From: Leucoraja erinacea
Lineage: Eukaryota
Direction: 5' to 3'
NCBI RefSeq assembly: GCF_028641065.1
Contig: NC_073393.1
Span: 19,840,001 to 19,904,000 of the forward strand
DNA length: 64,000 bases
The notes beneath the pieces were generated by a model, which was given only the letters and a program-made list of their open reading frames with translations, did not search any database and was not told the DNA's origin. Position numbers and translations under genes: made by a program. Shown here piece by piece: positions 15,380 through 61,791 of the stretch (position 1 is its first letter; every line of letters begins with the position of its first letter).

Positions 15380-17091
15380 TGAAAAGAAGACGTACAAAGG
15401 TAAGCTCGCCAAGAATATAAAGAAAAATAGTTAAAGCTTCTTCAGGTATGTTAAGAGAAAAAGATTAGTAAAGCCAAATGTGGGTCCCTTGAAGGCAGAA
15501 ACAGGTGAAATTATTATGGGGAACAAGGAAATGGCCGAAGATTCGAACAGGTACTTTGGTTCTGTCTTCACTAATGAAGATAAAAACAATCTCCCAGATG
15601 TACTAGAGGATCTAAGGAGATAAAGGATCTGAAAGAAATTTGCATAAGGTGAGAAATAGTATTGGGTAGACTGATGGAATTGATAAATCCCCAGGGCCTG
15701 ATGGTCTGCATAGGATAGGTTCCTGTGGATTGGAGTCTAGCTAATGTTATCCTACTTTTCAAGAAAGGAGTGAGAGAAAAAACTGAGAATTATAGACCAG
15801 TTAGCCTGACATTGGTGATGGGGAAGATGCTGGAGTCAATTATTAAAGAAGTAATAATAGCACATTTGGATAGCAGTAAAAGGATTGGTCCAAATCAGCA
15901 CGGATTTATGAAAGGGAAATCATGCTTGACTAATCTTCTGGAATTTTTTGAAGATGTGACAAGTAAATTGGATGAAGGGGTGCCAGTCGATGTAGTGTAT
16001 CTAGACTTTCAGAAAGCTTTTGATAAGATCCCACACAGGAGATTAGTGGGCAAAATTAGAACACATGGTATTGGAAGTAGGGTATTGACATCGATAGAGA
16101 ATTGGTTGGCAGACAGGAAACAAAGAGTAGGAGTAAACTAATCCCTGTCAGAATGGCAGGCAGTGGCGAGTGGAGTGCCACAGGGCTTGGTGCTGGGGCC
16201 ACAACTATTTACAATATATATTCGTGATTTGGATGATGGAATTAAAAGTAACACTAGCAAATTTGCAGATGACACAAAGCTGGGTGGCGGTGTGAACTGC
16301 GACGAGGATGCTAGGAGGTTGCAGGGTGACTAGGACAGGTTGAGTGAGTGGGCAGATGCAATAAAATGTACATAGATGTGAGGTTATCCACATTGGCAGC
16401 AAGAAAAAGGAGTTAGATTATTATCTCAGTGGTGTCAGATTAGGAAAAAGGGAAGTGCAACGAGACCTTGGTGTCCTTATACACCAGTCTCTGAAAGTAA
16501 ACACGCAGGTACAGCAGGCAATGAAAAAAGCTAATGGCATGTTGACCTTCATAATGAGAAGATTTGAGTATAGGAGTAAAAAGGTCCTTCTGCAGTTGTA
16601 CAGTGCCCTGATGAGACCACACCTGGAGTATTATGTGCAGTTTTGGTCTCCTAATTTGAGGAAGGACATTCTTGTTATTGAGGAGTGCAGTGTAGCTTCA
16701 CGAGGTTAATCCCCGGGATGGCGGCACTGTCATATGAGAAAAGATTGGAAAGACGGTGCTTGTATTCACTGGAATTTAGAAGAATGCGGTGGAATCTTAT
16801 AGAGACATATAAAATTGTAAAAGAACTGGACAAGCTAGATGCAGGAAAAATGTTCCCAATGTTGGGGGAGTCCAGAATCAGGGGCCACAGTCTAAGAATA
16901 AAGGGGAGGCCATTTAGAACTGAGATGAATTTAAAAGAGAGTTAGATAGAGCTCTTGCTGCTCGTGTAATCGAGGGGTATGGGGAGAAGGTAGGCACGGG
17001 TCATCAGCTGTGGATGATCAGCCATCATCACAATGAATGGTGGTGCTGGCTCGAAGGGCCGAATTGCCTCCTCCTGCACCTATTTTCTATG
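15380..17091 (+). mobile_element. CR1 LINE, 5'-truncated, decayed RT
   Basis: NYRPVSLT, QHGFMKGKSCLTNLLEFFE, YLDFQKAFD, GVPQG, KFADDTKL; several frameshifts. Confidence 0.92.
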
Positions 17092-18399: not shown

Positions 18400-19260
18400 T
18401 GATGAAGGCCTGTGGCTAGTGGTGTGCTGTTTGTCAGCTCTATCAATCATGAGAACTTGCATGGCATGATTAACAAATTTGAAAATGGCACGAAAGGGAG
18501 TGACAATGAAGTTGGTTGTCAAAACTTGCAGCAGGATCTATATCGGTTGGGCACGTGGGCTGAGGAATGGTTGATGGAATTTAATACAGAGAAATGTGAG
18601 GTGTTGCAATTTGGGAAGTCTAACGTGGGCAGGACTAACACAGTAAATGGTAGGGCTTGAGTATTGAGTATGGAAGTTGGGAGGTCATGTTGCAGTTATA
18701 TACTTGGTGAGGCCAGATTACGAGTATTGTGTTCAGTTTTGGTCACCATGTGACAGAAAATATGTTGTCAAACTGGAAAGGGTGCAGAGAGGATCTACAA
18801 GGATTATACCAGGACTCGAGTCCCAGAGCTTTATGGAGAGGTTGGGCAGGCTAGGACTTGATTCCTTGGAGTGCAGGAGAATGAGAAGTGATCTTATAGA
18901 AATGTACAAAATCATGAGAGGAATAAACAGCGTAAATGCACAGAGTCTTATGCCCAGAATAGTAGAATCGAGAACTAGAGGACATGGGTATAAGGTGAGG
19001 GGGGAAAAGATTAATAAGAACCCAAGGAAAAACTTTTTTACACAAAGGGTGGTGGGTGTATGGAACAAGCTGCTGGTGGAGGTAGTTGAGGTAGGTACTA
19101 ACGCAAAGATAAGAAACATTTGGACACATACATGGATAGGACAAGTTTAAAGGGATATGAGCCAAACATAGGCAGGTGGGACTAGTGTAGTTGGGGCATG
19201 TTAGTCAGCATGGGCAGTGTGGGAAAAATGGCCTGTTTTAATGCTGTATGTCTATGACTC
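18400..19260 (+). mobile_element. CR1 LINE 3' part
   Basis: WAEEWLMEFNTEKC, YCVQFWSP, FFTQRVVGVWNKL; tail ctatgactc. Confidence 0.88.
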
Positions 19261-19269
19261 ACTCGTTCC

Positions 19270-21330
19270 TTGATCATTAACCTCACTACTGTCCACAACC
19301 CCTCACCACTCTCTTCATCTCTGCACAATTTCCCTCATTCGCTTTCCATTCTCCTTATCCCGACACCACTCACCACTCCACCCCTTTCCCCACTCCACTC
19401 AACTCCATTCATCCTTCCTCACTTCCACTCTATTCCTCACCCCTCTCCCCTCATTCCTTCCCACTCCCATCCATTCACCCCACTGCCTTTCCAACACCCC
19501 TTCCCATACACCTCTCCAATCACCCTCCACCCACTTCACTCCCTTCACCTCAACCCTCCCCACTCCCCTGTCCATTTACCTCCCCTCCCCCTTAATCCCC
19601 CCATTCTCCTCACACCTCTCCAATCCCCACTGGCCTCACCCAACTCCCTTTCTGACTCCCCACTTGCCACCCTCCACTCCCCAATCCCCACTCCACACCC
19701 TCACTCCCCACTTCCCTCACCCTCCACCCAATTCCCTTTCCAACTCGCCATTCCCCTTCTCCACTCTCCACTGCTCCTCACCACTCCCCTCATTCTTCAC
19801 CCTGTCCATGCCCCCCCTCCCTTCAGCTTCCCCCACTCCACTCCTTTTAACACATCCCATTCTGCTTACCTGTGCCTGATCTCCATTCCCCCCGCCCTTA
19901 CTACTTCGCAGTCCCCCCACTCTTCAACACTTCCTTCACTACTCTCCACTCCCTTTACCCATCTTGACTCCCTGCCACACCCTCTTCACCCCTCCCCAAT
20001 CATCACTCCCTGCACCCTCCCTCACTCCTCACTCGCTCCCCTCTGCACTCCCTTCCCCACTCTCCACACCGCTCACCATTCCACGCTCCCCTCCCCACTC
20101 TTATTACCCCTCCCTTCACACTCCCCTCACTCCTCCATTCAACCCCTGTTTCTCTAAACCACCAAACCTCTCACTCCACCAAATCTGTCACCCCCACTCC
20201 CTTCAATCATCCCACTCCCCTCACCATACCTCACTTCCTGCAGCGCTTCCCACTCCTTTCAACTATCCTCTCCCTTCACCTCTTCACCACCAAAACAGTC
20301 CTCACCAATCCCTCCTGACTTTCCATCCCGTCACCCATAACCACTTCCTTCACTTTGCCCCTTCCTACTCCCCACTCCCCTCAACCTTTATATCTCTCCT
20401 GCCTCAAGCCTCCTCATCCCCACCACCTCCCTGCTCTCTACAATCACCACTGTTTTCACACTTCAACCCATCCCATTCCACTCACCATTCCCCTGCCCAC
20501 TCACCTCTCTCTCCCCATCCCCTCCTGACTCCCCACTTCCTTCCTCACTTCCTACCCCTGTCCACCTTCCACTTCCCACTCTCCCTCCCCTCACCTCACC
20601 CCTCATTCCTCCTCACTCACCCCCTCCCCGCAACCCTCCCCGCTCACTTCACTCCTCCCCATAACCCACTCCCCTTTACATCGACCAGTCATCATTGCCC
20701 TATCCATTCCCCACATCACACACTTTGACACTCCCAATCTCCTCATCTCTTCCCGTTCCCTCGTGCCTCCCCACTCCTTTCTTTCCTCTTGTCTCCCCAT
20801 GTCATTCACCAGTCACCTCTCACTGATCGTCTCACAACTATCCTGAACACTTACCTCTTCCCCCTTGCCTCTTCTCTCCCCACACCACTCTCCTCTTTCC
20901 TCATCACTTCCCTAATCCCTCTAATCCCTCATCCCCTCATATCCAGCCATCTTACCTCAGCACCTTCACTCACATCCTCACTGGCTTTACTAACATCCCA
21001 CCCTTCTTACTGGTCCCTTTTCCCCTTATCCCCTCATCTCCACTTACCTCAATCCACTCGCACTTCACTTTTCCCATTTCCCGTTTGCATTGCCCTCACC
21101 TCACTGATTTCACTCACCCTCCTCAGTGCTGCACTCGCCTCCCCCTCATTGGCTTCCACCCTCTTTCTCTCCTTAATTCATGCCTTCTGCCTCTACCCCT
21201 CAGTGACTCCATCATCCTTGGCTCTTCCCACCAACTTCCCTCTTCGCCAACTGCTCTAACCTTCCTCATGGTCACCTATCGCTATTCTCAAGGACTCCCA
21301 TCATCTTATTTACCTCATCAACCCTATCAA
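19270..21330. repeat. ~2-kb C/T-rich low-complexity tract
   Basis: Plus strand is nearly devoid of G, made of ccct/cact/ctcc units; it produces the spurious Pro/Ser/His/Leu ORFs. Confidence 0.9.
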
Positions 21331-21451
21331 CTCCAGAGACCTCTCCATTTCCACACCGCCCATCAACCCCATTTACACTCGTCTTAGAAGAACTTTTTTG
21401 TTCCTCGCCACATTCATATAAACTCACCGAAATTCTACCACACATCTATAC

Positions 21452-24091: not shown

Positions 24092-24583
24092 GAATAGAAT
24101 AGAATAGTTTCTTTATTGTCATTGTAACATGAACCATGTTACAACGAAATTTAAAAATGTCGGCCAGTCAGTGCCCCATCCAAACATTTCTAAAAGCTAA
24201 CGATACATACAAGATAAAATATTAAAAGATAAACAACTAAAATAAATATCATGAAAATAGCACGCATAAACACCCAACCCTCCATCCTTCTGTCGGTTTC
24301 ACAGTGTACCACAGTCCCTTAGTATGTATCGCCCCTGCGTTCCTTGGCGGCTACATTTAGTGCTTTTATAGCAGTGGGGTAAAAACTGTTTTTTAGTCTG
24401 TTCGTCCTTGTTCTTGTAGATCTGTACCGTCTGCCTGACGGCAACAGTTCAAACAGGGAGTGTCCGGGGTGGGAAATGTCCTTTATAATACTCTGGGATT
24501 TTTTAATGCAGCGGGAACTGTGTAAGTCCTCCAAGGTAAGGAGAGGGCAGCTGACAATCCTCTGGGCGTTGTCAATGGCCCTA
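24092..24583 (-). mobile_element. Rex1/Babar-type LINE 3' end
   Basis: SIIKDISHPGHSLFELLPSGRRYRSTRTRTNRLKNSFYPTAIKALN; (ctatt)n tail. Confidence 0.88.
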
Positions 24584-40244: not shown

Positions 40245-42574
40245 GAAAGCATCCAGAGAACCGGCCTCCACCAATCTCTGAGGCAGAGAATTCCACAGAC
40301 TCACAACTCTCTGTGAGAAAAAGTGTTTCCTCATCTCCGTTCTAAATGGCTTACCCCTTATTCTTAAACTGTGTCCCCTGGTTCTGGACTCCCCCTACAT
40401 CGGGAACATGTTTCCTGCCTCTAGCGTGTCCAAACCCTTAACAATCTTCTATGTTTCAATAAGATACCCTCTCATCCTTCTAAACTCCAGAGTGTACAAG
40501 CCCAGCCGCTCCATTCTCTTAGCATATGACAGTCCCGCCATCCCGGGAAACCTACGCTGCACTCCGTCAATAGCAAGAATGTCCTTCCTCAAATTACAGG
40601 ACACAAACTGCACACAATACTCCAGGTGTGGTCTCACTAGGGCCCTGTACAACTGCAGAAGGACCTCTTTGCTCCTATACTCGACTCTTGTTATAAAGGC
40701 CAACATGCCATTCGCTTTCTTCACTGCCTGTTGTACACTGCCTGTTGTACCTGCATGCTTACTTTCATAGACTGATGAACAAGGACCCCCAGATCCCATT
40801 GCACTTCCCCTTTTCCCAACTTGACACTATTTGGATAGTAATCTGCCTTCCTGTTTTTGATACCAAAGTGGATAACCTCACATTTATCCACATTAAACTT
40901 CATATCCCCCAACCTGTCGAAGTCACCCTGCATTCTCATAGCATCCTCCTCACAGTTCACACTGCCACCCAGCTTTGTGTCATCTGCAAATTCGCTAATG
41001 TTACTTTGAATCCCTTCATCCAAATCATTGATGTATATTGTAAATAGCTGCGGTCCCAGCACCGAGCCTTGCGGTATCCACTAGTCACTGGCTGCTATTC
41101 TGAAAGGGACCCGTTAATCCCTACTCTTTGTTTCCTGTCTGCCAACCAATTATCTATCCATGTCAGCACTCTACCCCCAATACCATGTGCCCTAATTTTG
41201 CCCACTAATCTCCTATGTGGGACCTTATCAAATGCTTTCTGAAAGTCCAGGTACACTACATCCACTGGCTCTCCCTTGTCCATTTTCCAAGTTACATCCT
41301 CAAAAAATTCCAGAAGATTAGTCAAGCATGATTTCCCCTTTGTAAATCCATGCTGACTTGGACCGATCCTGTTACTGCTATCCAAATGTGCGGCTATTTC
41401 ATCTTTCATAATTGATTCAAGCATCTATCCCACCACTGATGTCAGGCTAACTGCTCTATAATTCCCTGTTTTCTCTCTCCCGCCTTTCTTAAAAAGCGGG
41501 ATAACATTAGTTACCCTCCAATCCCCAGGAACTGATCCTCAGTCGATAGAACATTGGAAAATTATCACCAATGCATCCACGATTTCTAGACCCACTTCCT
41601 TAAGTACCCTGGGATGCAGACCATCAGGCCTGGGGATTTATCAGCCTTCAGTCCCATCAGTCTACCCAACACCATTTCCTTCAGTTCCTCCCTCACCCCA
41701 GATCCTCTGGGCACTACTATTTCAGGAAGATTGTTTGTGTCCTCCTTAGTGAAGACAGATCCAAAGTACCTGTTCAACTCAACTGGTCTTCAAGGGTCCA
41801 TCTTTGGTCTTATCTAATTTTTTCCTCTTCACATACCTAAAGAAGCTTTTACTATCCTCCTTTATATTCTTGGCTAGCTTACCTTCATACCTCATCATTT
41901 ATCCCCATATTGTCATTTTAGTTATCTTCTGTTGCTCTTTAAACATTACCCAATCCTTTTGTTTCCCGCTCATCTATGCTACATTGTACTTCTTCCCTTT
42001 TATTTTTATACTGTCCCTGACGTCCCTTGTCAGCCACGGTCACCCCTTACTCCCCTTGGAATCTTTCTTTCTCCTAGGAATGAACTGATCCTGCACCTTC
42101 TGTATTATTCCAAGAAATACCTGCCATTGTTGTTCCACTGTCATCCCTGCTAGGTTATCTTTCCAGTCAACTTTGGCCAGCTCCTCCTCATGACCCCATA
42201 GTCCCCTTTATTCAACTGTAACACTGACACCTCCGATCTACCCTTCTCCCTCTCCAATTGTAGACCTGACCATATTATGGCCACTGCCTCCTAATGGCTC
42301 GTTAACCTCAAGTTCCTTTATCTAATCTGGTTCATTGCATATCACTAAATCCAGAATTGCCTTCTCCCTGGTAGACTGCAATACAAGCTGCTCTATGGAT
42401 CCATCACAAAGGCACTCAACAAAGTCCCTTTCTTGGGGTCCAGTACCAACCTGGTTTTTTCAGTCTACCTGCATGTTGAAATCTCCCATAACAGCACAGC
42501 ATTACTTTTGCTATATGCCAAATTTAACTCCTGATTCAACTTGCACTCTATGTCCAGTCTACTGTTTGGGGGCC

Positions 42575-44174
42575 TATAACCATATAACCATATAACAATT
42601 ACAGCACAGAAACAGGCCATCTCGGCCCTACAAGTCCATGCCGAACAAATTTTGTTCCCCTTAGTCCCACCTGCCTGCACTCGTACCATAACCCTCCATT
42701 CCCTTCTCATCCATATGCCTATCCAATTTATTTTTAAATGATACCAATGAACCTGCCTCCACCACTTCCACTGGGAGCTCATTCCACACCGCCACCACTC
42801 TCTGCGTAAAGAAGTTCCCCCTCATATTACCCCTAAACTTCTGTCCCTTAATTCTGAAGTCATGTCCTCTTGTTTGAATCTTCCCTATTCTCAAAGGGAA
42901 AAGCTTGTCCACATCAACTCTGTCTATCCCTCTCATCATTTTAAAGACCTCTATCAGGTCCCCCCTTAACCTTCTGCGCTCCAGAGAATAAAGACCTAAC
43001 TTATTCAACCTATCTCTGTAACTTAGTTGTTGAAACCCAGGCAACATTCTAGTAAATCTCCTCTGTACTCTCTCTATTTTGTTGACATCCTTCCTATAAT
43101 TTGGCGACCAAAATTGTACACCATACTCCAGATTTGGTCTCACCAATGCCTTGTACAATTTTAACATTACATCCCAGCTTCTATACTCAATGCTCTGATT
43201 TATAAAGGCTAGCATACCAAAAGCTTTCTTTACCACCCTATCTATATGAGATTCCACCTTCAAGGAACTATGCACGGTTATACCCAGATCCCTCTGTTCA
43301 ACTGTATTCTTCAATTCCCTACCATTTACCATGTACGTCTTATTTTGATTTGTCCTGCCAAGGTGTAGCACCTCACATTTATCAGCATTAAACTCCATCT
43401 GCCATCTTTCAGCCCATTTTTCCAAATGGCCTAAATCACTCTGTAGACTTTGGAAATCCTCTTCATTATCCACAACACCCCCTATCTTGGTATCATCTGC
43501 ATACTTACTAATCCAATTTACCACACCTTCATCCAGATCATTGATGTACATGACAAACAACAAAGGACCCAACACAGATCCCTGAGGCACCCCACTAGTC
43601 ACCTGCCTCCAACCCGATAAACAGCCATCCACCATTCCCCTCTGGCTTCTCCCATTCAGCCACTGTTGAATCCATCTTGCTATTCCTGCATTTATACCCA
43701 ACAGTTGAACCTTCTTAACCAACCTTCCATGAGGAACCTTGTCAAAGGCCTTACTAAAGTCCATATAGACAACATCCACTGCTTTACCCTCGTCAATTTC
43801 CCTAGTAACCTCTTCAAAAAATTCAAGAAGATTAGTCAAACATGACCTTCCAGGCACAAATCCATGTTGACTGTTCCTAATCAGACCCTGTTTATCTAGA
43901 TGCTTATATATATTGTCTCTAAGTATCTTTTCCATTAATTTGCCCACCAATGAAGTCAAACTAACAGGTCTATAATTGCTAGGTTTACTCTTAGAACCCT
44001 TTTTAAACAATGGAACAACATGCGCAGTACGCCAATCCTCGGGGATATTCCCGTTTCTAATGACATTTGAAATATTTCTGTCATAGCCCCGGCTATTTCT
44101 ACACTAACTTCCCTCAATGTCCTAGGGAATATCCTGTCAGGGCCTGGAGACTTATCCACTTTTATATTTTTCAA
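42575..44174 (-). mobile_element. Young CR1 LINE, 5'-truncated, with an uninterrupted 449-aa RT ORF
   Basis: ORF 42661-44010: NYRPVSLTS, YMDFSKAFD, GVPQGSVLGP, YADDTK; (atggttat)n tail. Confidence 0.95.
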
Positions 44175-49840: not shown

Positions 49841-49892
49841 ATGATGACACGTATCTTACTGCAATTGATTGTTCTTCACATCAGCTGCGCCG
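49841..49892 (+). CDS. Exon 1: signal peptide
   Basis: ATG ATG ACA...GCC G|gtatat; MMTRILLQLIVLHISCA is a hydrophobic leader with a phase-1 donor 171 bp upstream of the V exon, the typical IgSF leader arrangement. Confidence 0.85.
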
Positions 49893-52800
49893 GTATATTT
49901 TACTCTTGCTATAGACAGTCCGACCGAAAGTTAATTATCAATTTATATGTTTGCTGATCCTTTATCTTTATTTATTTTCTCCTTTCGTGCAATTTTCAAT
50001 TAATTTGGTCAATACCTCGCTTTAATCCAAAACCTTATAGTTTGATTTTTCGTTTCCCGACAGCTGGTGGCGATGGTCCGTTGACCGTAACACAAGTTCC
50101 AGAAGCAGTTTTGATGCGGGGTGACTCGGCAGTGCTTTACTGCATTTATCCAATCTTCTCAGACAACAAGCCGTACAAAGTGCATTGGTGGAGAGATGGG
50201 GATAATAGATTCCTGGATGAAAGTGCAGATAGACGAATCCAGTTTTATTTCCTGAGAGGGGGAAGCGCTGTCTTACGGGTGAAGGACGTGACAGTGAAGG
50301 ACGCCGGGCTCTATTTCTGCAGCTTGACACGTTCCAAAGTTTTAAACGGGACTGGTACAAAGCTGGTAGTTTACGGTGAGTTTCGGGGAGAGGAGTGAGC
50401 CAGATCGGTCAACTTCAACTGTTGGAGGAAAACAGAACCAGGGGCCACAGTTTAAGAATAAAGAGTAAGCCATTTAGAACGGAGACGAAGAAATACTTTT
50501 TCACACAGAGAGTTGTGAGTCTGTGGAATTCTCTGCCTCAGAGGGTGGTGGAGGCCGGTCCTCTGGATGCTTTCAAGAGAGAGCAAGATATGGCTCTTAA
50601 AGATAGCAGTCAGGGGATATGGGGAGAAGGCAGGAACGAGGTACAGATTGGAGATGATCAGCCGTGATCACATTGAATGGCGGTGCTGGCTCAAAGGACC
50701 GAATGGCTAACTCCTGCACATACTGTCGTCTACTGTCTATTCACCAACTAAAAGCGATTAGCTCAATCAAGTTAAAGAAATTGCGCTTTCTTCATCATCT
50801 GTGTGCTTTGAAATAATATGATTTTTGTGATGGGTTAGATAGTATTTTTGACGCAATTACCAACGAATCCGAATAGACGTATTGAGAGAGTAAATGATGC
50901 CTTCCACACCTTCTGCTTGACAGAATTAAAACACCTTTCGCGTATATTTTAGAATTGCTTCAACGCCGAGGGAAGGTTGTTACTGAAACCAACAACACAC
51001 GATACAGGTGGTTGAGAGTGACAGTATGCAGGGTTCCGAATGTGGTACTGATCGAGGAGATTTTTTAATTGATTTCTTTGGACCTGTCATATTTTTTTTA
51101 ATCTAAATTGTAAGGAATTACAGAATTATAGAATCATACAACACAACAACTGGCCCGTTCTGCCCACGTCGTCTCTGCCGACCGTGCTACTTATATATGT
51201 TGATGGCGTTTGCCTGCATCAGGACCATATCCCTCTATAACGTTTCTCCGTAATTACCAGTCTAACGCGATTTAAATGTTATTACTGTACTGCACCCTCT
51301 TCTGTGGCAGATGTTCCAAGTGTGCAAACCTTCCTCGTTTACATTTTCCACTTTTACCTAAAAACCGTGCCTCATAGTGCGTGATTCCACTATTCTGGGG
51401 GGGGGGGGGACTCTGTCTGTGTGGCCCCGATATTTAAAAAAAAAAAAAAACTTTTACAAGGTTACTCTTCTGCCTCCTATGTTCTACTGAGAATAAACCA
51501 AGTTCACCAAATGTCTCATTTTTTATTCATCATCTGTGTCTCGTTATAACTAGGCCCCTCTATTTCAGTCAACATTCTGGTGAACTTCCTTTGCACTTGC
51601 TCAATTGGTACCATGTTAATCCGTAGTATAAGTTTGGTCACATTTCTGATTGTTCCGGATGCTACTTGAAATTATATAGGAGCCGTGAAGCGAGTCAGTC
51701 ATTGAGGGATAAAGATCTGCATTGTTACATTTAGTCTGAAGAAGGGCCTCGACCCGAAACGTCAACTACTCATTTTATCCAGAGATGCTGTCTGACCCGC
51801 TGGTTACTACAGCTTTTTATGTCTACCTTCGGCTTAAACCAGCATCTCTAGTTCCTTCCTACACATTGTTACATTAACATGTATTTTCCGTTAACTTTCC
51901 ACTTATGGTTGTAGCAATAGCAGCATTGGAAATAGAATTAAGATCATGTAGGTATTGAAAACGGTTTGTTTTTAAATGGTGCAAATGTACTTGTAGTTTG
52001 AATCTCCAGCCTACATTTTGGGCGGCTTACGCAGACGCTGATCACTGTTTGAGCTATTGTAAATGGACGGGGTAGTGACATTTTCATGTATGAATGTCAT
52101 TGATATCGTCTCAGAGGCCTTTACATACCATCCGACATTCTTAAGGCAATGTGATGGTGCTGGGATAATTGTGCTCGAAGTAATGCAATACTTTCTTCTG
52201 TGCTTAATGGAACTCTAAATAGCGAGCTGTTCCCTCTGGTCCAGATGTACAATATGTTTTCACACATTCTTCTGACCTTGTAAAGTAAAGCTTTGTTTTT
52301 TAACCTCAAATTACTTCTGAATAAACCTTATGCCCGAGTTAGTCATTTGAACAACGAGAAAGAATATATTTGTAAAATAGTGATAGTCGAGCGCTTATTA
52401 TTGATTACATTTTGTACAATTAACACAAAATTATAATCAAAATCGCGAAGACGATTAAAAAAAATCAAGTTAATGCTTTGGCTCCGAATGTCCCTGCACA
52501 GAGCGGAACGCATCATTTACATGCGCTGCGAGTAGTAGCGGAAGCGCCATATTTATGAAGTAAGGTGTTGTACAATATACCACAATTGTAAAATCAAGGC
52601 ATACGACAACGAGGATTAAAAGGAAGGAAATTAGTCGTTAGATAATACAAGGAAAATACTTAACAGTTTTAAATCACTGTAAGTGCATTGGTTATAAAAC
52701 CAGGCTGAAAACAAATATAATTCAATTAAGATTTTTTTCGAGGTTGCAATGAAATTTGATTCGTCACGAAAATTGCGGTGAAATTAAAAAAAATCGTTTT

Positions 52801-55506
52801 ATTTTCCAGACCCCCCAACTCCTCTGAGCTTGACCACCATGCTGCCGGAGAACACATCGGTTACTCTGATTCTCGTTTGTAAAACAGCAACGTTCTTTCC
52901 TCTTGATCTGAATATTACTTGGTACAAAAATGGGTCAGATATTATACAGAAGATTGAGCCAAACAAAACGCAGACATCAGCAGGACTGTACGAAGCTTGG
53001 AGCTGCCTGACCGAGATAGACGATGTGGAGAGCGGGACAGTTTATACCTGCCAGGTGTCTCATATTTCTCTTCCGAATCCAACCAATATCAGCTACACTT
53101 TCTACAGCCGAGGTAAGAATAACGATACATTTTCAATGCAATTTGGCCACATATCCATTATTACCTCAGGAAAAGGTGTGGTTAATAAACCATATTGTCC
53201 ATTTAGCACCGTTGTATAACCGTTGACACGTGTGTACCACAACAAAGGGCGATGTTGGGACAAACGTCCATACTTGTGTGTGTCTCATGAACCTTATACT
53301 CATGAAAGTATATTTTCGTGCCAAAACACCACGCTATGGTAAGATCAGGAGTAATTGGACTTACATATTCTGGAGACAGAGGTGGTTGGCTGGGCATTGT
53401 TTCCCTTAGTGTACAGGAGGCTGAACGTAAAACATACAATAGTACCGCACAGGAGAGGGCCCTTCATCCGACAATGATTGCACACAACATGATGCCTCAT
53501 CTGCCTGTAGATGATCCATATCCCTCGATTCCATGTGCCAACTGCAGATGCTGGTTTACACCAAAGATAGACACAGAATGCTCGAATAACTCAGCGTGAC
53601 AGACAGCATCTCTGGGTAGAAGGAATGGGTGACGTTTTGGGTCACGATCCTTCCTCGTGTGCCTGTCTAACAGCCTCCTAAACTCCACTACAGTATCTGT
53701 CTCCACCACCACCCCTCGCAATCCGTCCCAGGATCTCAATACACTTAGTAAAAGTCTTGCCCCGCACATCTCCAAGAAACCTTCCCCATCTCAGCTTATA
53801 GCTATGCAGTCTAAGGATGACAATGTCAAGCCCTGGAGAATGAATCTGATGGTCTACCATATCTACGCCTCCTAAAGTTATTCAGGTCGACCTTTTGCAT
53901 TCCGTAAAAACCTCTTAAATGTCATTATTGTTCCTTTGTATCTTGGTATCTTTATCCACTACCAGGTCTGGCAGTACATTCCAGGCACCAACTACGCTCT
54001 GTGCATAACACTTGCCCGGCATCTCTTCTTTAAACGTGTCCATCCAACCTAAACCTACTCTAGTCGTTGTCCTTTACACCAATAAAGGCTGTGACCAGTT
54101 GTGCCACTCATAATTTTATATACTTCCATCCAGAATCCTTTCAGCCTGCACTGCTCTGGAAAAGACAATCAAATCTGTTCTAACCTCTCCTTGTACCCAA
54201 TACCCTCTAATCTAGACAGCATCCTGGTTGAAGGCAGCATTGTGGCGCTGATGATGGAGGGAGCTGTCGACGGAGCCAAGACCCGTTTGTACATCAATGC
54301 TCATCTACGTTTACATCCAAGTCATTCATATAGAAATCACAAACATTGATCCTGGTAGAAGTGCACTTATCACAGAGCTCCAACCATAATAACACTCTTC
54401 TACCTCAACTCTCTGTCTTGTTTGAGTAAGCCAGTTCTGAATCCATACCACCAAGTCACTCTGAATCCGATCCATCTCAATTTTCTGGATCAGCCTGTCC
54501 TGCCGTGGACTAAGCCAAGGTGACTGACCGTAATTAATCAATTTTCTGCCAATAAATCCAATCCTGAATTATACTCTTCAATAAATTCCCTTTCACTGAC
54601 GAACCATTCCCCATGTTATTATGCTTCCCAACCAGCCTTGTATATTTCGCTTAGCCGTCTACAATGGAATCTACGGTTAAAACTCCAAGATTTTCCAGCA
54701 TATCTTAATGGATGGACAATAATTATTGATTAGACAAGACAACTACGAAAACAGAAATGATCGCATTGGAATTTGCAAGAGCTTGCTTTGTTGAAACTGC
54801 GCGCTTCCTTCCCCGCTACACATCACGTACTTCTACATTCTTCATATGGCCTCGCCTATGGTACAAATAACCTCCTGCCATATTACGTTGGATTCACCCG
54901 GCCTGTAATTTACTCTTCCAATGGATTCCTCCAGATTTGCACTGGAATTTATTCTCCCCATGCGACCAAGCCGATCAGCACCCAGCGAGATTCTTTAAAC
55001 TTTACAAGTGATTCACTCATGCCTGTTGAAGGATTTCTAAACTTGTCGAGGTAAAGGGGGCGGTGGATGACACCATTTCACGGAGTGCTGCTGTGTGTCC
55101 TTCGCTTAATTGCCATTATTCTTGATCCTTTATCCTCTCCATATTTTACTTTTTACATCGAGCCTTAATCCCAAGCATGAAGATTTCGCAGCATTGGTTA
55201 TAATCGACATTTTAAAATGAATGATGGTCCGCAATTGCAAGATCACTGACACTATTTGTTAGAATTCAATTTGCAATGAATTCCAATGTACTTTGCAAAA
55301 AGATGGCAGGTTCCGCCCACGCGTAAACGAATCTATAAAATGGTTTCAATTTAATAGATTCTCTGAGACATTTGAACATTTATTTTGTCATGGTGACCTG
55401 AATCAAGTACACAGGACAAGATGTTAAGAAGTCCCTTGTGCCAATAGGTGGGGAGCATTTCACGACATTCGTTGACTGTTGAGAGGAGTAGACGCTCAAC
55501 ATCGAT

Positions 55507-55541
<35 letters not shown>

Positions 55542-58500
55542 GGGTATATCTTGGCCTGATCTACCATTGGCATCATTTAAGAAAAATAACTGCTTTAGAA
55601 AATCAATGACAGAATTTTTGCAAATATTTTGAGGACACGCTGTTTCCTGCCCGAATAATGGACATTGCTTGTACATTGGAAACTCTTGTATATAATGGAG
55701 ACAGTCTAACAACCAAGTTATAAAATTAAAGATAGACACAAAAAGCTGGAGTAACTCAGCGGGACAGGCAGCATCTCCGGAGCGAAGGAATGGGTGACGT
55801 TTCGGGTCGAGACCTTTCTTCAGACCCGACCCGAAACGTCATCCATTCCTACTCTCCAGAGATGCTGCCTGTTCCGCTGGGGTGCCTCAGGGATCTGTGT
55901 TGGGTCCTTCGTTGTTTGTCATGTACATCAATGATCTGGATGAAGGTGTGGTAAATTGGATTAGTAAGTATGCAGATTATACCAAGATAGGGGGTGTTGT
56001 GGATAATGAAGAGGATTTCCAAAGTCTACAGAGTGATTTAGGCCATTCGGAAGAATGGACTGAAAGATGGCAGATGGAGTTTAATTGCTGATAAATGTGA
56101 GGTGCTACACCTTGGCAGGACAAATCAAAATAGGACGTACATGGTAAATGGTAGGGAATTGAAGAATACAGTTGAACAGAGGGATCTGGGAATAACCGTG
56201 CATAGTTCCTTGAAGGTGGAATCTCATATAGATAGGGTGGTAAAGAAAGCTTTTGGTATGCTAGCCTTTATAAATCAGAGCATTGAGTATAGAAGCTGGG
56301 ATGTAATGTTAAAATTGTACAAGGCATCGATGAGACCAAATCTGGAGCATGGTGTACAATTTTGGTCGCCCAATTATAGGAAGGATGTCAACAAAATAGA
56401 GAGAGTACAGAGGAGATTTACTAGAATGTTGCCTGGGTTTCAACAACTAAGTTACAGAGAAAGGTTGAATAAGTTAGGCCTTTATTCTCTGGAGCGCAGA
56501 AGGTTAAGGGGGGACTTGATAGAGGTCTTTAAAATGATGAGAGGGATAGACAGAGTTGATGTGGACCAGCTTTTCCCTTTGAGAATAGGGAAGATTCAAA
56601 CAAGAGGACATGACTTCAGAATTAAGGGACAGAAGTTTAGGGGTAACATGAGGGGGAACTTCTTTACTCAGAGAGTGGTAGCGGTGTGGAATGAGCTTCC
56701 AGTGGAAGTGGTGGAGGCAGGTTCGTTGATATCATTTAAAAATACATTGGATAGGCATATGGATGAGAAGGGAATGGAGGGTTATGGTATGAGTGCAGGC
56801 AGGTGGTACTAAGGGTAAAAAGTTGTTCGGCATGGACTTGTAGGGCCGAGATGGCCTGTTTCCGTACTGTAATTGTTATATGGTTATATGGTTAATGCAG
56901 TTTTTTTTGTGTCTATCTTCGGTTTTATCAAGCATCTGTACCTCTTTCTTATAAGAGTTATAACATTAATTCGCGTTTGTCTATATATTGGATAGACTTC
57001 TTTTGTAGAGGTAACAAGACGTTTTGAGGAATGATTGCAGTAGCTGACGTCAATGAAGAGTTTTGAATTAAAAAGATTCGACAAAGCTTCAATCAAAATG
57101 TTGGTTATTAATGCTGTCGCTCATAGAATTAAACCAGTCAACTAATCAATAAACAAGCTTTCAAGAAGGCATACGAAGTAATGAAGAGAGTTTTACAGAG
57201 AAAAAGCTGGATATAGGATGTTGCTCTTCAATTATCGGATGGGAAAGCGTGGGTGGAATAAGATTCAGTGCAGTAATCTGTTTATGATTCTTACAAAACT
57301 TGTAACCAGACATAAAAGCTGACCCATGTAAGTTGCCATTTGATGCATTTGAAGTAAAATCAAAAGACAGGCCAGAAAGTGATATGTGCGCGTCCTTTCA
57401 CTAGAGCTGCGCGTTGTGCCGTCCCAAACCATTGCATATTTTACGTGTTAATGGGCCTCTTGACAAATTTAATCGATTCGTTACCGCAAATCAATAAAAC
57501 CATTCATGGAATGTTTCTTGTGTTTGAGGAAGATATCGTGAATCTGCTGCCATGCCTAACCCCTCCAGGTTGTTCACTGACATTCTAAGTCAAAGGAGCA
57601 TTTTCGTCTGTGTTCTGTATGGATTTTCGATGGTCGCCGTGCCATCCTGAATACAGCGGACGTCAATTCGCCTTTGGAAGTAGACTACGGGGTCATGCAC
57701 ATCATTAGAATGGACGGTTCCAAAAAAATCGGGTTCCATCGATACTCTGGATTTAAAAAAACAAATGATTATGTGTTTCTGTGTTGTACAGCACATCATT
57801 TGTCACGAATGGTATTTCCACTGTTCAGTCACAGCGAGCGAAATCTACCTTCGATTTTCCTACCACTCTCTTGAAATTAATTTTTATTTGGGATCGGACT
57901 TCACAGCAAAATTCAACTTCCATAATTACATCCCCAATATTCCATGAATACTGCATCGTCTATAATTCTGCCTCGAGCACACCAGGGTCGCCAAAAAACG
58001 TAATGACGGTAGAGATTTTTTTCTAGCCACACTGTTGAATCACAAGGTGAAGAGTATATAACTTTTATCCCTTCCCATTCGTAGACATTCCACAAAATGT
58101 CTTGTTGTACCGACACAGCTATAAATCACTACTTGTTACGCTCTGCGACCTATCCAAGCTACATACTTATATACTGTTTAGAATTGGTTGCAGGCAAATA
58201 TTTGGTTCTTCTGCGCCTCAATGATTCTTTGATCATATGTTATTTACACACAACTAGCATGAGACAAAATGAAAAAGACAGCAACTGCGTTCATGGGCAA
58301 TGTTCATGTGTGTTTATTCCCGTCGACGTCAACTCGATATAAACAACGACAGAATTATGCTTTTGAAATAGCAGCCTGTCCTATTATTAACACTATAAAT
58401 ATATTACAACTGGCCATTATTTTATTGTTTACAGTTCCATTACCCGATAATACATTTCATAACTGGATTTTTGGTTGCATCGGAGCAGGATTGATACCTC

Positions 58501-60287
58501 TCATAATCATTATTTTCATCGTGAAACGGAAAGGTAAGGCTCCTAAACTTTTTGATCTCGAGATTGTTATAAAATTAACCAATCAAAATTCAGCAATACT
58601 TTAGTTAGAAATACAGCTCGGAAACAGGTGATTCGGCCCACCGAGTCGGCGCCGACCAGCGACCCCGTCATAGTCACACTATCGTACACACACTAGGGAC
58701 AATTTACAGTTATACCAAGCCATTTAATCTACAAATCTGTACGTCTTTGGAGAGTGGGAAGAAACGGAGATGCAGGAGAAAATAATATTGGAGAGTTATA
58801 TTGGATCGGACACTGCATGCGTTAGCTGGTCTGTGGTACACACGCCCCATCTCACTGAGTGCGTCGTTTCTCGGAAGCTAACTTTTGAGTTAGTCACCGA
58901 TTTGTTCATGCAGGATAGATGCTTGGTGTTTTGGGGCAGGTTGTGGGATAAGGGGTTGAGTGTGAAAAATGGGTCGGTGATGCAGAAACACATTCTGTAA
59001 TTGAATGTGCTCCGACTCGAAGAGGACTAATATCCTGTAGATTTTTAACAATTGGTATCGTGATATTAGTTTTGCTACATACATGTATACAAGCTCAAAA
59101 GTTAAAAAAAATGTATATGCTGCCAGATTTACTGGCTACTACGATTCTTTGTAATGGCCAAAAGTTTTGTATTCAAAATTACCTCACTCTAGGGACGTGC
59201 AGAAAATCGAAAGGACGTGCAGCGCATACAACGAAGGTAAGACGTGTATAATACTGCAGAGACGTTCAAACAGCACTCGGACACCCTCCCAATTATTACC
59301 TTCGTTTGGATAATTACAAAATTCTCCAAGTCAACGCGTGATGAAATTGGAGCAAAATGAAATTCCTCAGTAATGCCTTCAAATGCAAACACAGCTACTG
59401 CAGGCCCATGTGTGTACTTGAATTTGTTAATGGAAGCATGGCGATAGAAACGTAGAATTGGGAGAAGGAATACGCGACATGGTCCTTCGACCTTTCTTGG
59501 TCGTTCAATACTTTCTCCCATTGTCCCTTGATCCCTGAGACTTGTTTCGCGCTGTAGTTCTCTCTCATATTATAACAATGTTCACATCATTTTGAATAAA
59601 TGTCATAATTTGGATTCCAGTGATTTGTGAGATAGATTTTCTTCTCTCCTGGAGAAGAACGCTGTCCCCATTACAGTTTGAAATCGCTTTTCCCGTATTA
59701 TTTTACAATGGTTCCTGGTACTGGGTTTCCCATCAATGGGAAATGACATTACTCCATCATATCTCTCCTATGCCGTGGATTTGTAAACATTTGTCTGGCT
59801 GCCTTCTCATGCGTCCAAATTTTAGTGAAATTACCTCAATTTAACCCAATGCATACGTTAGACTTGACACAGTCTATCAGTCTGTTGAAATCTCACTGAG
59901 CTCACCCCATCATAGGAAGATCTCGTCACAGTCAAAGAGACCAAAGAAACGCACGCCTCTCAAGGAGACCAGTCATCAAGGTCTATGCAAGCCGATACAT
60001 TCCTTTTCCGATAGCTTTTTTCATCGGAATTTGGCATGCTGCTGGAATGTACGATGTTTAATTTTGACTATTGTGGTAAATGTATGGAAAATATTTTGAT
60101 TGGTAGGAAATAATTCTAACAAAATACTGTTTTTTAGACTAAGCATTTGGAACCCAATGAAGCAATTGTTTACAGTGATTTCCGTATCGCTGATGCAAAG
60201 CGATCTGCCGAAGATAAATATGCAGAACCGAGCACAATATATACCCAGGTATATGCAACATGCGCCATTTCACGGAGCAGCGAATGA
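49841..60287 (+). CDS. Non-rearranging VJ-C1 immunoglobulin-superfamily type I receptor with ITIM-like/ITSM tail (SIRP/NITR/NKp30/VJC1-like); join(49841..49892,50064..50375,52810..53112,58435..58533,59193..59236,60138..60287)
   Basis: Six exons with GT-AG sites and compatible phases (1,1,1,1,0) sum to 960 nt = 319 aa + stop, with no internal stop: MMTRILLQLIVLHISCAAGGDGPLTVTQVPEAVLMRGDSAVLYCIYPIFSDNKPYKVHWWRDGDNRFLDESADRRIQFYFLRGGSAVLRVKDVTVKDAGLYFCSLTRSKVLNGTGTKLVVYDPPTPLSLTTMLPENTSVTLILVCKTATFFPLDLNITWYKNGSDIIQKIEPNKTQTSAGLYEAWSCLTEIDDVESGTVYTCQVSHISLPNPTNISYTFYSRVPLPDNTFHNWIFGCIGAGLIPLIIIIFIVKRKGTCRKSKGRAAHTTKTKHLEPNEAIVYSDFRIADAKRSAEDKYAEPSTIYTQVYATCAISRSSE*. Orthology cannot be assigned from sequence alone. 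Confidence 0.85.
50064..50375 (+). CDS. Exon 2: V-set Ig domain with germline-joined J-like G strand
   Basis: ttcccgacag|CT...TAC G|gtgagt. VTQ-P start, B-strand Cys (VLYC), C-strand Trp (VHWWR), DAGLYFC and G strand NGTGTKLVV (GxGTxLxV) all lie in one exon. Confidence 0.95.
50420..50741 (+). mobile_element. CR1 3' end in intron 2 of the IgSF gene
   Basis: RTRGHSLRIKSKPFRTETKKYFFTQRVVSLWNSLPQ; begins only ~45 bp after the V-exon donor. Confidence 0.88.
51732..51863 (+). mobile_element. Penelope-derived 132-bp element beginning with a hammerhead-like core
   Basis: 12-bp TSD cattgttacatt (51720-31, 51864-75); tagt-CTGAAGA-A-GGGC-CTCG-ACCC-GAAAC-GTC. Confidence 0.75.
52810..53112 (+). CDS. Exon 3: C1-set Ig domain
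   Basis: ttttccag|AC...CGA G|gtaaga. C1 signatures LVCKTATFFPLDLNITWYKNG and YTCQVSHISL; phase 1-1. Confidence 0.95.
55878..56894 (+). mobile_element. Young CR1 LINE (same subfamily as 42575-44174) in intron 3, inserted into a Penelope-derived palindrome (~55729-56945)
   Basis: ORFs 55882-56091 and 56102-56812 are nearly identical in protein to ORF 42661-44010; one 1-nt frameshift (tttaattgctg); same tail. Confidence 0.95.
58435..58533 (+). CDS. Exon 4: connecting peptide and transmembrane segment
   Basis: ttgtttacag|TT...AAA G|gtaagg. VPLPDNTFHN-WIFGCIGAGLIPLIIIIFIV-KRK: 20-aa hydrophobic span followed by a basic stop-transfer motif; no charged TM residue. Confidence 0.88.
58601..58785 (-). 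mobile_element. HE1-type SINE 3' half in intron 4
   Basis: ttagttag..ggaaacagg..ttcggcccaccgagtc..acactagggacaattt..gtacgtctttggag. Confidence 0.8.
59193..59236 (+). CDS. Exon 5: short basic cytoplasmic exon
   Basis: cctcactctag|GG...AAG|gtaaga. Encodes GTCRKSKGRAAHTTK; phase 1 to 0, which exactly bridges the TM exon and the last exon. Confidence 0.7.
60138..60287 (+). CDS. Exon 6: cytoplasmic tyrosine-motif exon
   Basis: tgttttttag|ACT...GAA TGA. TKHLEPNEAIVYSDF...STIYTQV...SSE*; this frame is not reported by the ORF track. Confidence 0.8.
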   Translation, partial: TKHLEPNEAIVYSDFRIADAKRSAEDKYAEPSTIYTQVYATCAISRSSE

Positions 60288-61518
60288 ATCACAGTTGAAT
60301 GGAATTTCAAGATGTAACTGAGTGCTTCGTTCGTAGCTTTGTCTAATTGCAATTAACAAAATGCACTCAAAAAGGGGGGAAATCTAATAGAAACGGCAGA
60401 ATTGAGGGCCTTTGCTTTAGTTTAATTTACTTTTCGTGAATAAGCGAGGCTATAATCCATAATACACCACTAACTGAAATTCAGGTGGTGATTAAAGGGC
60501 ACAATCTTGAATCTCTCTCGTGCTTCAGATAAAGGTGCTGTCATATTGCTTCGTGTAGAAGCTTGGGGGATTTGGACCCAACGAGGAGGGAGGACTGGCA
60601 ACCAATTTCTAAGTAAAGAACGTGTATGACTCGGAGAGGAACCTACACGTGGCAGTGATCCCATTCAAACTTTGTTCTCTAGGAGTGGAGATCAAAAGAT
60701 TGCTTTGCGCTTATGCAATGGATGGGATGAATAGCTGCAGTGTACGTAGTAAATAGTACACTGGTGAAGGGAATAACTGCTTACGGTAGCTGGGTTGGTA
60801 ACCAAATGCACCGATTTGACCTGCATGGTGTCAGTTGTCTGGAATTGGAACATTTGCTGGAACTGCACTCAGCTGGCCAGATGAAAGTCATTCTATCACA
60901 TGCTCAAATTATGCTTTGACGATGAGAAACTGTTTCGGAGTCAGTTATTGGAGTAGCTTTTCGCAGGATACACCGCCTACTCTTGCAGCTCTACTATTTA
61001 TGAGGCTAATCCTCGTGCATTTGTGATCTATGATAAGTACTAAAGAGTTGATGTTGGAGGATTCAGTGACCGCAATGCCACTGATGTTCAGGGTAATCGG
61101 TTGGACTAAACATTTTGTGGTGTCATCCAACACCTTTAGTCTATCCGGTCGTGAAATTGCCAACAGGGATGGACTATTTGAATTTCTGAGAATTTGCAAG
61201 CGGAACGGAATAACACCCCAGATGTGATTTAAGATGGACGGGAGGTCATTTATGAGCCATTCAACATGTATGAGCCTACGATACAGCCCAGAATATTTCC
61301 CATGGTGATGGTAACGCTCTCGGATAGTTAATCTGGAGCAATAACAACCAGTGCACCGCATGATTCCAGTTATACAGAACCCAATTATACTGTAATTGGA
61401 ATATACCCGTGATAGAAATAGTGCAGGGAACATTCGCCTGATTGATCTTTGCGGTTTTGCTACATGGGGAGATGTTAGGAACATATATTGGAGAAGAGAG
61501 AATAAAGGATGGTCACAA

Positions 61519-61791
61519 NNNNNNNNNNNNNNNNNNNNNNNNNNNNNNNNNNNNNNNNNNNNNNNNNNNNNNNNNNNNNNNNNNNNNNNNNNNNNNNNNN
61601 NNNNNNNNNNNNNNNNNNNNNNNNNNNNNNNNNNNNNNNNNNNNNNNNNNNNNNNNNNNNNNNNNNNNNNNNNNNNNNNNNNNNNNNNNNNNNNNNNNNN
61701 NNNNNNNNNNNNNNNNNNNNNNNNNNNNNNNNNNNNNNNNNNNNNNNNNNNNNNNNNNNNNNNNNNNNNNNNNNNNNNNNNNNNNNNNNNN
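61519..61791. other. Assembly gap (273 N)
   Basis: Run of n. Confidence 1.

Follow-up and report, generated by a model that had tools for sequence, protein, structure and literature searches.

The DNA analysed here (the window) is a stretch of 64,000 nucleotides from the skate Leucoraja erinacea, positions 19,840,001 to 19,904,000 of the forward strand of contig NC_073393.1 (assembly GCF_028641065.1); all positions below count from its first letter. Its main feature is a gene on the plus strand at 49841-60287, read from the sequence and its translation as six open exons for a leader, a V domain with a J-like end, a C1-set constant domain, a stalk with a transmembrane (TM) segment and two cytoplasmic segments. 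This is a real and conserved receptor gene, probably of the inhibitory type. All five introns run from GT to AG, and the phases of the junctions (1, 1, 1, 1, 0) are compatible. The coding total of 981 nt corresponds to 326 codons plus the stop codon TGA, with a cytoplasmic tail of about 74 amino acids (aa). The original prediction had proposed an intact spliced reading frame of 319 aa with a 67-aa tail; the six open exons bear out the frame but not these lengths, and the excess of 7 residues over the proposed chain probably sits in exon 5.

The exons were searched and aligned singly and never joined, and the alignment score of each exon peptide was judged against shuffled sequences. As stand-ins for the joined chain served the orthologue P0158 and P0159, a partial RefSeq model of the skate gene itself (223 aa, named "tapasin-related protein-like"). 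Exon 1 (49841-49892) holds the ATG and the first part of the leader, 17 codons plus 1 nt, and closes in phase 1 on a confirmed GT donor, followed by a leader intron of 171 nt. Its 17-aa peptide aligned from residue 1 with the N-termini of P0158, P0157 and P0001 (z 7.6, 5.3 and 3.5, respectively). The end of the leader and the complete V domain, including the J-like G strand, share exon 2 (50064-50375), the peptide of which is 55-57 % identical to the orthologues. Exon 3 (52810-53112) encodes the C1-set domain with the motifs TWYKNG and YTCQVSH, at 71-73 % identity to the orthologues of Mobula and Hypanus. A short stalk, an uncharged TM helix and a KRK stop-transfer signal are encoded by exon 4 (58435-58533), bounded by AG and GT and ending in phase 1; aligned locally with the TM regions of P0001, P0157 and P0158, its peptide gave z values of 9.9-14.2, and none of 200 shuffles reached the score. 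The least certain exon is exon 5 (59916-59980), a basic juxtamembrane cytoplasmic segment of 21 codons. It has canonical AG and GT sites and a length of 2 modulo 3, as needed to lead from phase 1 to phase 0; its resemblance to the relatives was weak (z at most 1.7), and the orthologues carry 11-16 basic residues at this position. Exon 6 (60138-60287) encodes the rest of the cytoplasmic tail with its tyrosine motifs and ends with the TGA stop. The orthologues P0001, P0158 and P0157 share its tail module in colinear order (TK-H/Q ... x-x-Y ... S-T-I-Y), with z values of 6.0-10.5 and a score reached by 0 of 200 shuffles. Homology to orthologues thus supports five of the six predicted exons, 1-4 and 6.

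Exon 2 matched the Pfam V-set profile with an E-value of 1.4e-8, and exon 3 the C1-set profile with 5.6e-12. The V-set match covers the profile to its end (position 109 of 109) and hence takes in the G strand. Here lies the J-like motif NGTGTKLVV (50345-50371, plus strand), which fits GxGTxLxV; an Asn replaces the usual Phe and creates an N-G-T sequon. Its two glycines, G95 and G97 in the exon-2 peptide, do not vary among seven V-domain sequences (alignment A2), and in an alignment of 34 family members (A1) their columns are invariant or conserved in at least 90 %. Since exon 2 ends in the J consensus, V and J are fused in the germline. The whole 64-kb window was scanned for recombination signal sequences (RSS; heptamer, 12/23 spacer, nonamer) and none was found near the gene; the sole RSS-like match, a weak one, is on the minus strand at 24522, 25 kb away. 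The window holds no second V-like or C1-like exon. In the PDB, exon 2 matched the V domains of antibody light chains (VL), T-cell receptors (TCR) and shark VNAR, aligned through the J region, and exon 3 matched constant domains of IgM, the alpha3 domain of MR1 and class I molecules of the major histocompatibility complex (MHC), and SIRP domains d2 and d3. The best PDB matches of a V-only profile of the family were shark VNAR, VL, TCR Vα and CD79b. An AlphaFold model of P0159, built on a family alignment of 44 sequences, shows two confident immunoglobulin (Ig) domains with a mean predicted local distance difference test score (pLDDT) of 86.7 and values above 90 in the C1 domain. Antibody light chains were the best Foldseek matches of this model, over about 200 columns, and shark UrIg2 was also among the matches. 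These results agree with what had been proposed from the letters alone: the domain plan of an Ig light or TCR chain, V and J in a single germline exon lacking an RSS, and a chondrichthyan VJ-C1-TM gene. Its V domain is closest to those of antigen receptors.

The hydrophobic stretch of the TM exon has no charged residue, which makes pairing with adaptors that carry immunoreceptor tyrosine-based activation motifs (ITAM) unlikely. Two tyrosine motifs were located in the tail by translation and alignment with the orthologues. The first, IVYSDF (60165-60182, plus strand), resembles an immunoreceptor tyrosine-based inhibitory motif (ITIM), and the orthologues have LTYVTL, LTYLTL or LKYVTL at this site. 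The second, TIYTQV (60234-60251, plus strand), is a canonical immunoreceptor tyrosine-based switch motif (ITSM), with TIYAQT or TIYSET in the orthologues. The two tyrosines are 23 residues apart, and the tail module of the family, an ITIM-type tyrosine, a spacer of about 22-23 residues and T-x-Y, is thereby present in skate exon 6. Most relatives in the family likewise have an uncharged TM segment, and their tails carry LTYxxL and TEYxx[IVL].

The V exon was searched against 1.8 billion cluster representatives. The strongest matches were single-domain matches to a Heptranchias protein (368 aa, 56 % identity, E-value 2.5e-32) and a Mobula protein (55 %), and E-values of 2.5e-32 and 1.6e-29 were obtained for P0001 and P0002, respectively; dozens of further proteins of 220-490 aa gave one N-terminal V match each. 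Names were looked up for 40 representative relatives; all of these, and the listed cluster members, belong to cartilaginous fishes, of the genera Callorhinchus, Heptranchias, Heterodontus, Chiloscyllium, Hemiscyllium, Scyliorhinus, Mustelus, Carcharodon, Cetorhinus, Mobula, Hypanus, Hemitrygon, Narcine and Amblyraja. The searches for homologous proteins returned relatives from no other group, a weak test of absence from bony vertebrates given the word prefilter and length window used. The RefSeq names follow no consistent scheme: SIRPα-like, tapasin-related-like, Ig lambda-1 light chain-like, NCR3 ligand 1-like (NCR3LG1-like) and uncharacterized. In species with several recorded members, these all share a single chromosome and often have accession numbers in sequence, which indicates a clustered multigene family. 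The skate gene shows the motifs of the family: WW-R/K-x-G in the V domain, N-G-T-G-T/S-x-L-x-V as its G strand and, in C1, an opening PPTPL as well as TWYKNG and YTCQVSH.

A maximum-likelihood tree was calculated for 54 family proteins, with multi-V proteins, near-duplicate isoforms and C1-only fragments excluded. P0159 grouped with Mobula and Hypanus (Shimodaira-Hasegawa-like approximate likelihood ratio test support 99); this group was joined by Heptranchias, Heterodontus and a Chiloscyllium fragment, with Callorhinchus outermost and a support of 99 for the clade. The branching order follows the species tree, and the terminal branch of the skate, 0.47, is close to the median of 0.44. Such an order and an ordinary branch length point to one conserved, apparently single-copy lineage older than the split of chimaeras and elasmobranchs. 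By sequence comparison, the skate gene is thus the orthologue of a lineage kept in chimaeras, sharks and rays, inside a large family of VJ-C1-TM genes. Other members of this family vary in domain number. P0091 of Amblyraja radiata, from a paralogous lineage, has two near-identical tandem C1 domains and hence a SIRP-like three-domain plan, V-C1-C1; the tandem is either a recent exon duplication or an assembly artefact. P0118, the RefSeq isoform X4 of a Heterodontus gene, retains the V domain and the tail motifs and lacks C1, an NKp30-like V-TM form, whereas its sister isoforms X1-X3 (e.g., P0126) are V-C1-TM. The same contrast of a form without and a form with C1 was seen between P0060 and P0094 of Mobula birostris, but under different RefSeq names; these two may be products of one gene or of adjacent paralogues.

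The first residue of the RefSeq model P0159 is a Met inside the V exon, and P0159 has the same V-to-C1 junction as the six-exon model. It then reads through the donor of exon 3 into intron 3 (53113-53219, plus strand), from which its last 35 residues derive. This read-through tail is predicted to be unstructured (pLDDT about 50), and the orthologues instead continue into a TM segment. The TM-less product is therefore probably a model artefact or a minor form. Identity with tapasin or TAPBPR was rejected because the N-terminal tapasin domain is missing; the RefSeq name reflects an automatic best hit. With a truncated skate model and names that span tapasin-related, light chain and B7H6-like proteins, the RefSeq annotation of the family has to be seen as unreliable.

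The reading that we favour, with a probability of roughly 0.7, is a type I membrane receptor with a split leader, a germline-joined VJ domain, one C1 domain, an uncharged TM segment and a tail with ITIM-like motif and ITSM, the skate orthologue of a single-copy lineage; its inhibitory mechanism we infer by analogy. The V domain would bind a putative, probably conserved ligand, and upon binding Src-family kinases would phosphorylate the two tail tyrosines. The paired phosphotyrosines may recruit tandem-SH2 phosphatases (SHP-1/SHP-2) or SAP-type adaptors, and these would damp cell activation, as with SIRPα and PD-1. The proposed mechanism would operate independently of RAG rearrangement. One gene kept from chimaeras to skates implies a stable ligand and function, and the single-copy lineage offers a practical entry for ligand fishing, SHP-binding tests and cell-type mapping.

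Several observations weigh against this receptor. The RefSeq model contains neither leader nor TM segment nor tail. The ITIM-like motif IVYSDF departs from the consensus by a non-canonical Phe at +3; thus, of the ITIM/ITSM tail in the original prediction, the ITSM was confirmed but the ITIM was not a canonical one. A homodimer prediction for the ectodomain of the Mobula orthologue returned no verdict (score 0.00) and bears neither way on pairing. The case for exon 5, which is probably real, ends with its splice signals, the required length class and its basic composition. Finally, exons 3 and 4 had zero depth in three raw RNA runs of unknown tissue, of which 5-25 % was sampled (52780-58560), and intronic repeats were covered hundreds to thousands of times in the same runs. 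The zero depth is no evidence for or against expression; the RNA-seq check that had been proposed for this gene, carried out for the region of exons 3 and 4, did not confirm transcription. The NK or myeloid cell type suggested in the original prediction is pure guesswork. A further run of unrecorded kind that contains V-region words, X3, gave contigs covering introns and exons evenly at a depth of 2-5 (52864-58560). They differ from the window by about 1-3 %, and three of the differences fall in the C1 exon (52976, 53004 and 53017). Even cover of exons and introns, the low depth and a divergence of about 2 % mean that X3 behaves as DNA, and the differences suggest that it comes from a different individual or from a closely related species.

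Beyond the gene, the window consists mostly of retroelement debris, and flanking genes are lacking. Copies of a reverse-transcriptase family of the LINE (long interspersed nuclear element) type are present in intron 3 (55790-56990), at 42661-44010 and 40449-41424 on the minus strand and at 15725-16141, 18677-19150 and 231-602 on the plus strand; the longest open frame of this type has 449 aa. The copy in intron 3 and a shorter repeat at 53360-53740 account for the hundreds to thousands-fold cover in all three RNA runs, which suggests that the LINE-type family is abundantly transcribed somewhere in the genome. A region of about 2 kb at 19270-21400 is pyrimidine-rich and of low complexity, with a GC skew of -0.65 and long spurious frames rich in Pro, Ser, Leu and His. 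Past the stop codon of the receptor gene, candidate polyadenylation signals occur at 60491 (ATTAAA) and 61501 (AATAAA), and 273 N follow just downstream of the gene at 61519-61791.

Among the alternatives, a cartilaginous-fish co-orthologue of the SIRP family has to be weighed first. The gene would then have kept, or been reduced to, one C1 domain and encode a myeloid "don't-eat-me" receptor for a CD47-like ligand. Many family members are named SIRPα-like in RefSeq, and the family profile matched the SIRPα structure 2wng with 3e-31, colinear over V and C1 (d1-d2; profile positions 24-214, chain residues 3-205). By features of a protein language model, SIRPα clusters were the nearest named neighbours (0.96). 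The tails carry paired tyrosine motifs with a spacing of approximately 23 residues, and the SIRPα tail is similar; the Amblyraja paralogue P0091 shows the V-C1-C1 plan. However, the skate gene has a single C1 exon, and antibody heavy chains and UrIg2 score equally well or better against the same family profile; the UrIg2 structure 9dmx was its second-best PDB match. The V domains matched best by the V-only profile were VNAR, VL and TCR Vα rather than SIRP, and no bony-vertebrate protein was present among the relatives with names looked up. We consider descent from a common SIRP gene unlikely.

In 2021, Kinlein and colleagues reportedly described an NCR3 (NKp30) family in the nurse shark, and the skate gene could be a member of this family. 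Its germline VJ domain has local motifs like those of NKp30, namely W-W/F-R-D, the G-strand sequon N-G-T and, in relatives, Y-x-C-R-V. Human NKp30 matched the V exon over its full length with an E-value of 7e-4, and some genes of the family yield V-only, NKp30-like isoforms (P0118 compared with P0126). Against membership, the V profile of the family did not have NKp30 among its 60 best PDB matches, and the name NCR3 was borne by none of the 40 representative relatives looked up nor by the listed cluster members. In white shark, catshark and sawfish the NCR3 genes are located between DDAH2 and AIF1 on the MHC chromosome, in the class III region (Veríssimo 2023). The RefSeq names of the family are absent from the MHC tables examined, and the white-shark member P0061 is on a sequence of 193.5 Mb, whereas on chromosome 19, which carries the MHC, the last gene ends at 115.6 Mb. 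This makes it probable that the family is separate from the NCR3 cluster linked to the MHC. In the papers of 2023 and 2025, NKp30 counts as a VJ gene, and the novel VJ-C1 gene is UrIg. Taken together, membership in the NCR3 family appears improbable. As a side observation, some 20 genes without a label follow just after NOTCH4 on the catshark MHC chromosome (NC_052158.1, 17.80-18.30 Mb); almost all of them are encoded on the plus strand, most span 8-15 kb, and together they look like an unannotated tandem multigene family (Veríssimo 2023, supplement).

The weakest alternative, a silent or decaying skate locus or a secreted, TM-less read-through form as main product, is decidedly improbable: three RNA runs in which exons 3 and 4 had no depth, the end of the RefSeq model in intron 3 and its lack of a leader, and the degenerate ITIM IVYSDF would fit it, but each of the six exons is open and has canonical splice sites, the orthologues share the conserved leader, TM segment and tail, the branch length is unremarkable, the read-through tail is of low confidence and has no counterpart in the orthologues, and the RNA runs were of unknown tissue and sampled to 5-25 %. 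Two further identities were rejected. A rearranging V segment is contradicted by the fusion of J to V and the RSS search, and B7H6 by the family V profile, which best matches VNAR, VL and TCR Vα, and by the J motif, which B7 V domains are not known to have.

A membrane receptor of the inhibitory type, as preferred here, bears on the history of antigen receptors. Research on germline-joined VJ-C1 genes treats them as relics of the receptor which, split by the RAG transposon, gave rise to antibodies and T-cell receptors. Recent shark work has centred on UrIg and UrIg2, and the membrane-bound family of the skate gene is much larger. In the searchable literature we found no paper that names or analyses this family, with key papers, such as those on nurse-shark NCR3 and on PRARPs, outside that scope; it goes unmentioned in papers from 2023-2025 on non-rearranging VJ-C1 genes of sharks. 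The suggestion that the gene may be uncharacterised is in line with this result, but it already has a partial RefSeq model, and relatives are automatically named SIRP-like. A real gap in the literature is possible, on the doubtful side. The singular novel system that the original prediction saw in this gene was not borne out: besides the partial model there are orthologues in chimaera, sharks and rays, and the family comprises many lineages, with many members per species. Tentatively, the family might be a third, undescribed lineage of non-rearranging VJ-C1 genes, membrane-bound and inhibitory unlike UrIg and UrIg2, and either sister to SIRP or near the stem of Ig and TCR. If so, it would show what role a light-chain-like VJ-C1 receptor plays without RAG, in a conserved single-copy member with a findable ligand.

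SIRPα is the closest characterised analogue of the skate gene. In both, the chain begins with a V domain whose G strand is J-like and continues with C1-set sequence, an uncharged TM segment and a tail with paired tyrosine motifs, which in the skate gene would be putative sites for SH2 phosphatases. SIRP proteins differ in having two C1 domains (V-C1-C1), compared with the one C1 exon between V and TM in the skate gene, and four tail tyrosines, in two ITIM pairs that bind SHP-1/SHP-2, compared with one ITIM-like motif and one ITSM; the family of the skate gene, unlike SIRP, has been seen in cartilaginous fishes only. NKp30/NCR3 shares with this family the non-rearranging VJ receptor and, in some paralogues, V-only isoforms. 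It consists, however, of a single VJ domain without a constant domain, whereas in the skate gene a C1-set exon is joined to V, and the TM segment of mammalian NKp30 has a charged residue for pairing with CD3ζ or FcRγ, which the skate TM segment lacks; the specific similarity between the two is weak. Ig light and TCR chains have the same leader-VJ-C1 chain plan. In contrast to these, V and J of the skate gene are joined in the germline without RSS, a membrane-proximal interchain cysteine is missing, and its own TM segment and inhibitory-type tail stand in place of CD3 or CD79 partners. To our knowledge, NITRs and PRARPs have no C1-set domain. Germline VJ domains with ITIM-bearing tails are known from the teleost NITRs and from the PRARPs of bony vertebrates (PMC11599192). 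UrIg and UrIg2 are likewise genes of cartilaginous fishes that lack RSS, encode C1-type domains and have the leader split and VJ in one exon; for UrIg2 the last two features have been described (PMC12227049). UrIg is secreted and has three constant domains, UrIg2 has 9-11 (Flajnik et al. 2023, 2025; PMC12227049). An ITIM/ITSM tail has not been reported for either, as the term "ITIM" was not found in PMC12227049. The skate gene thus differs from both in its architecture, with one C1 domain followed by a TM exon and a signalling tail, whereas UrIg and UrIg2 have three or more C1-type domains and are, respectively, secreted and provided with a long stalk.

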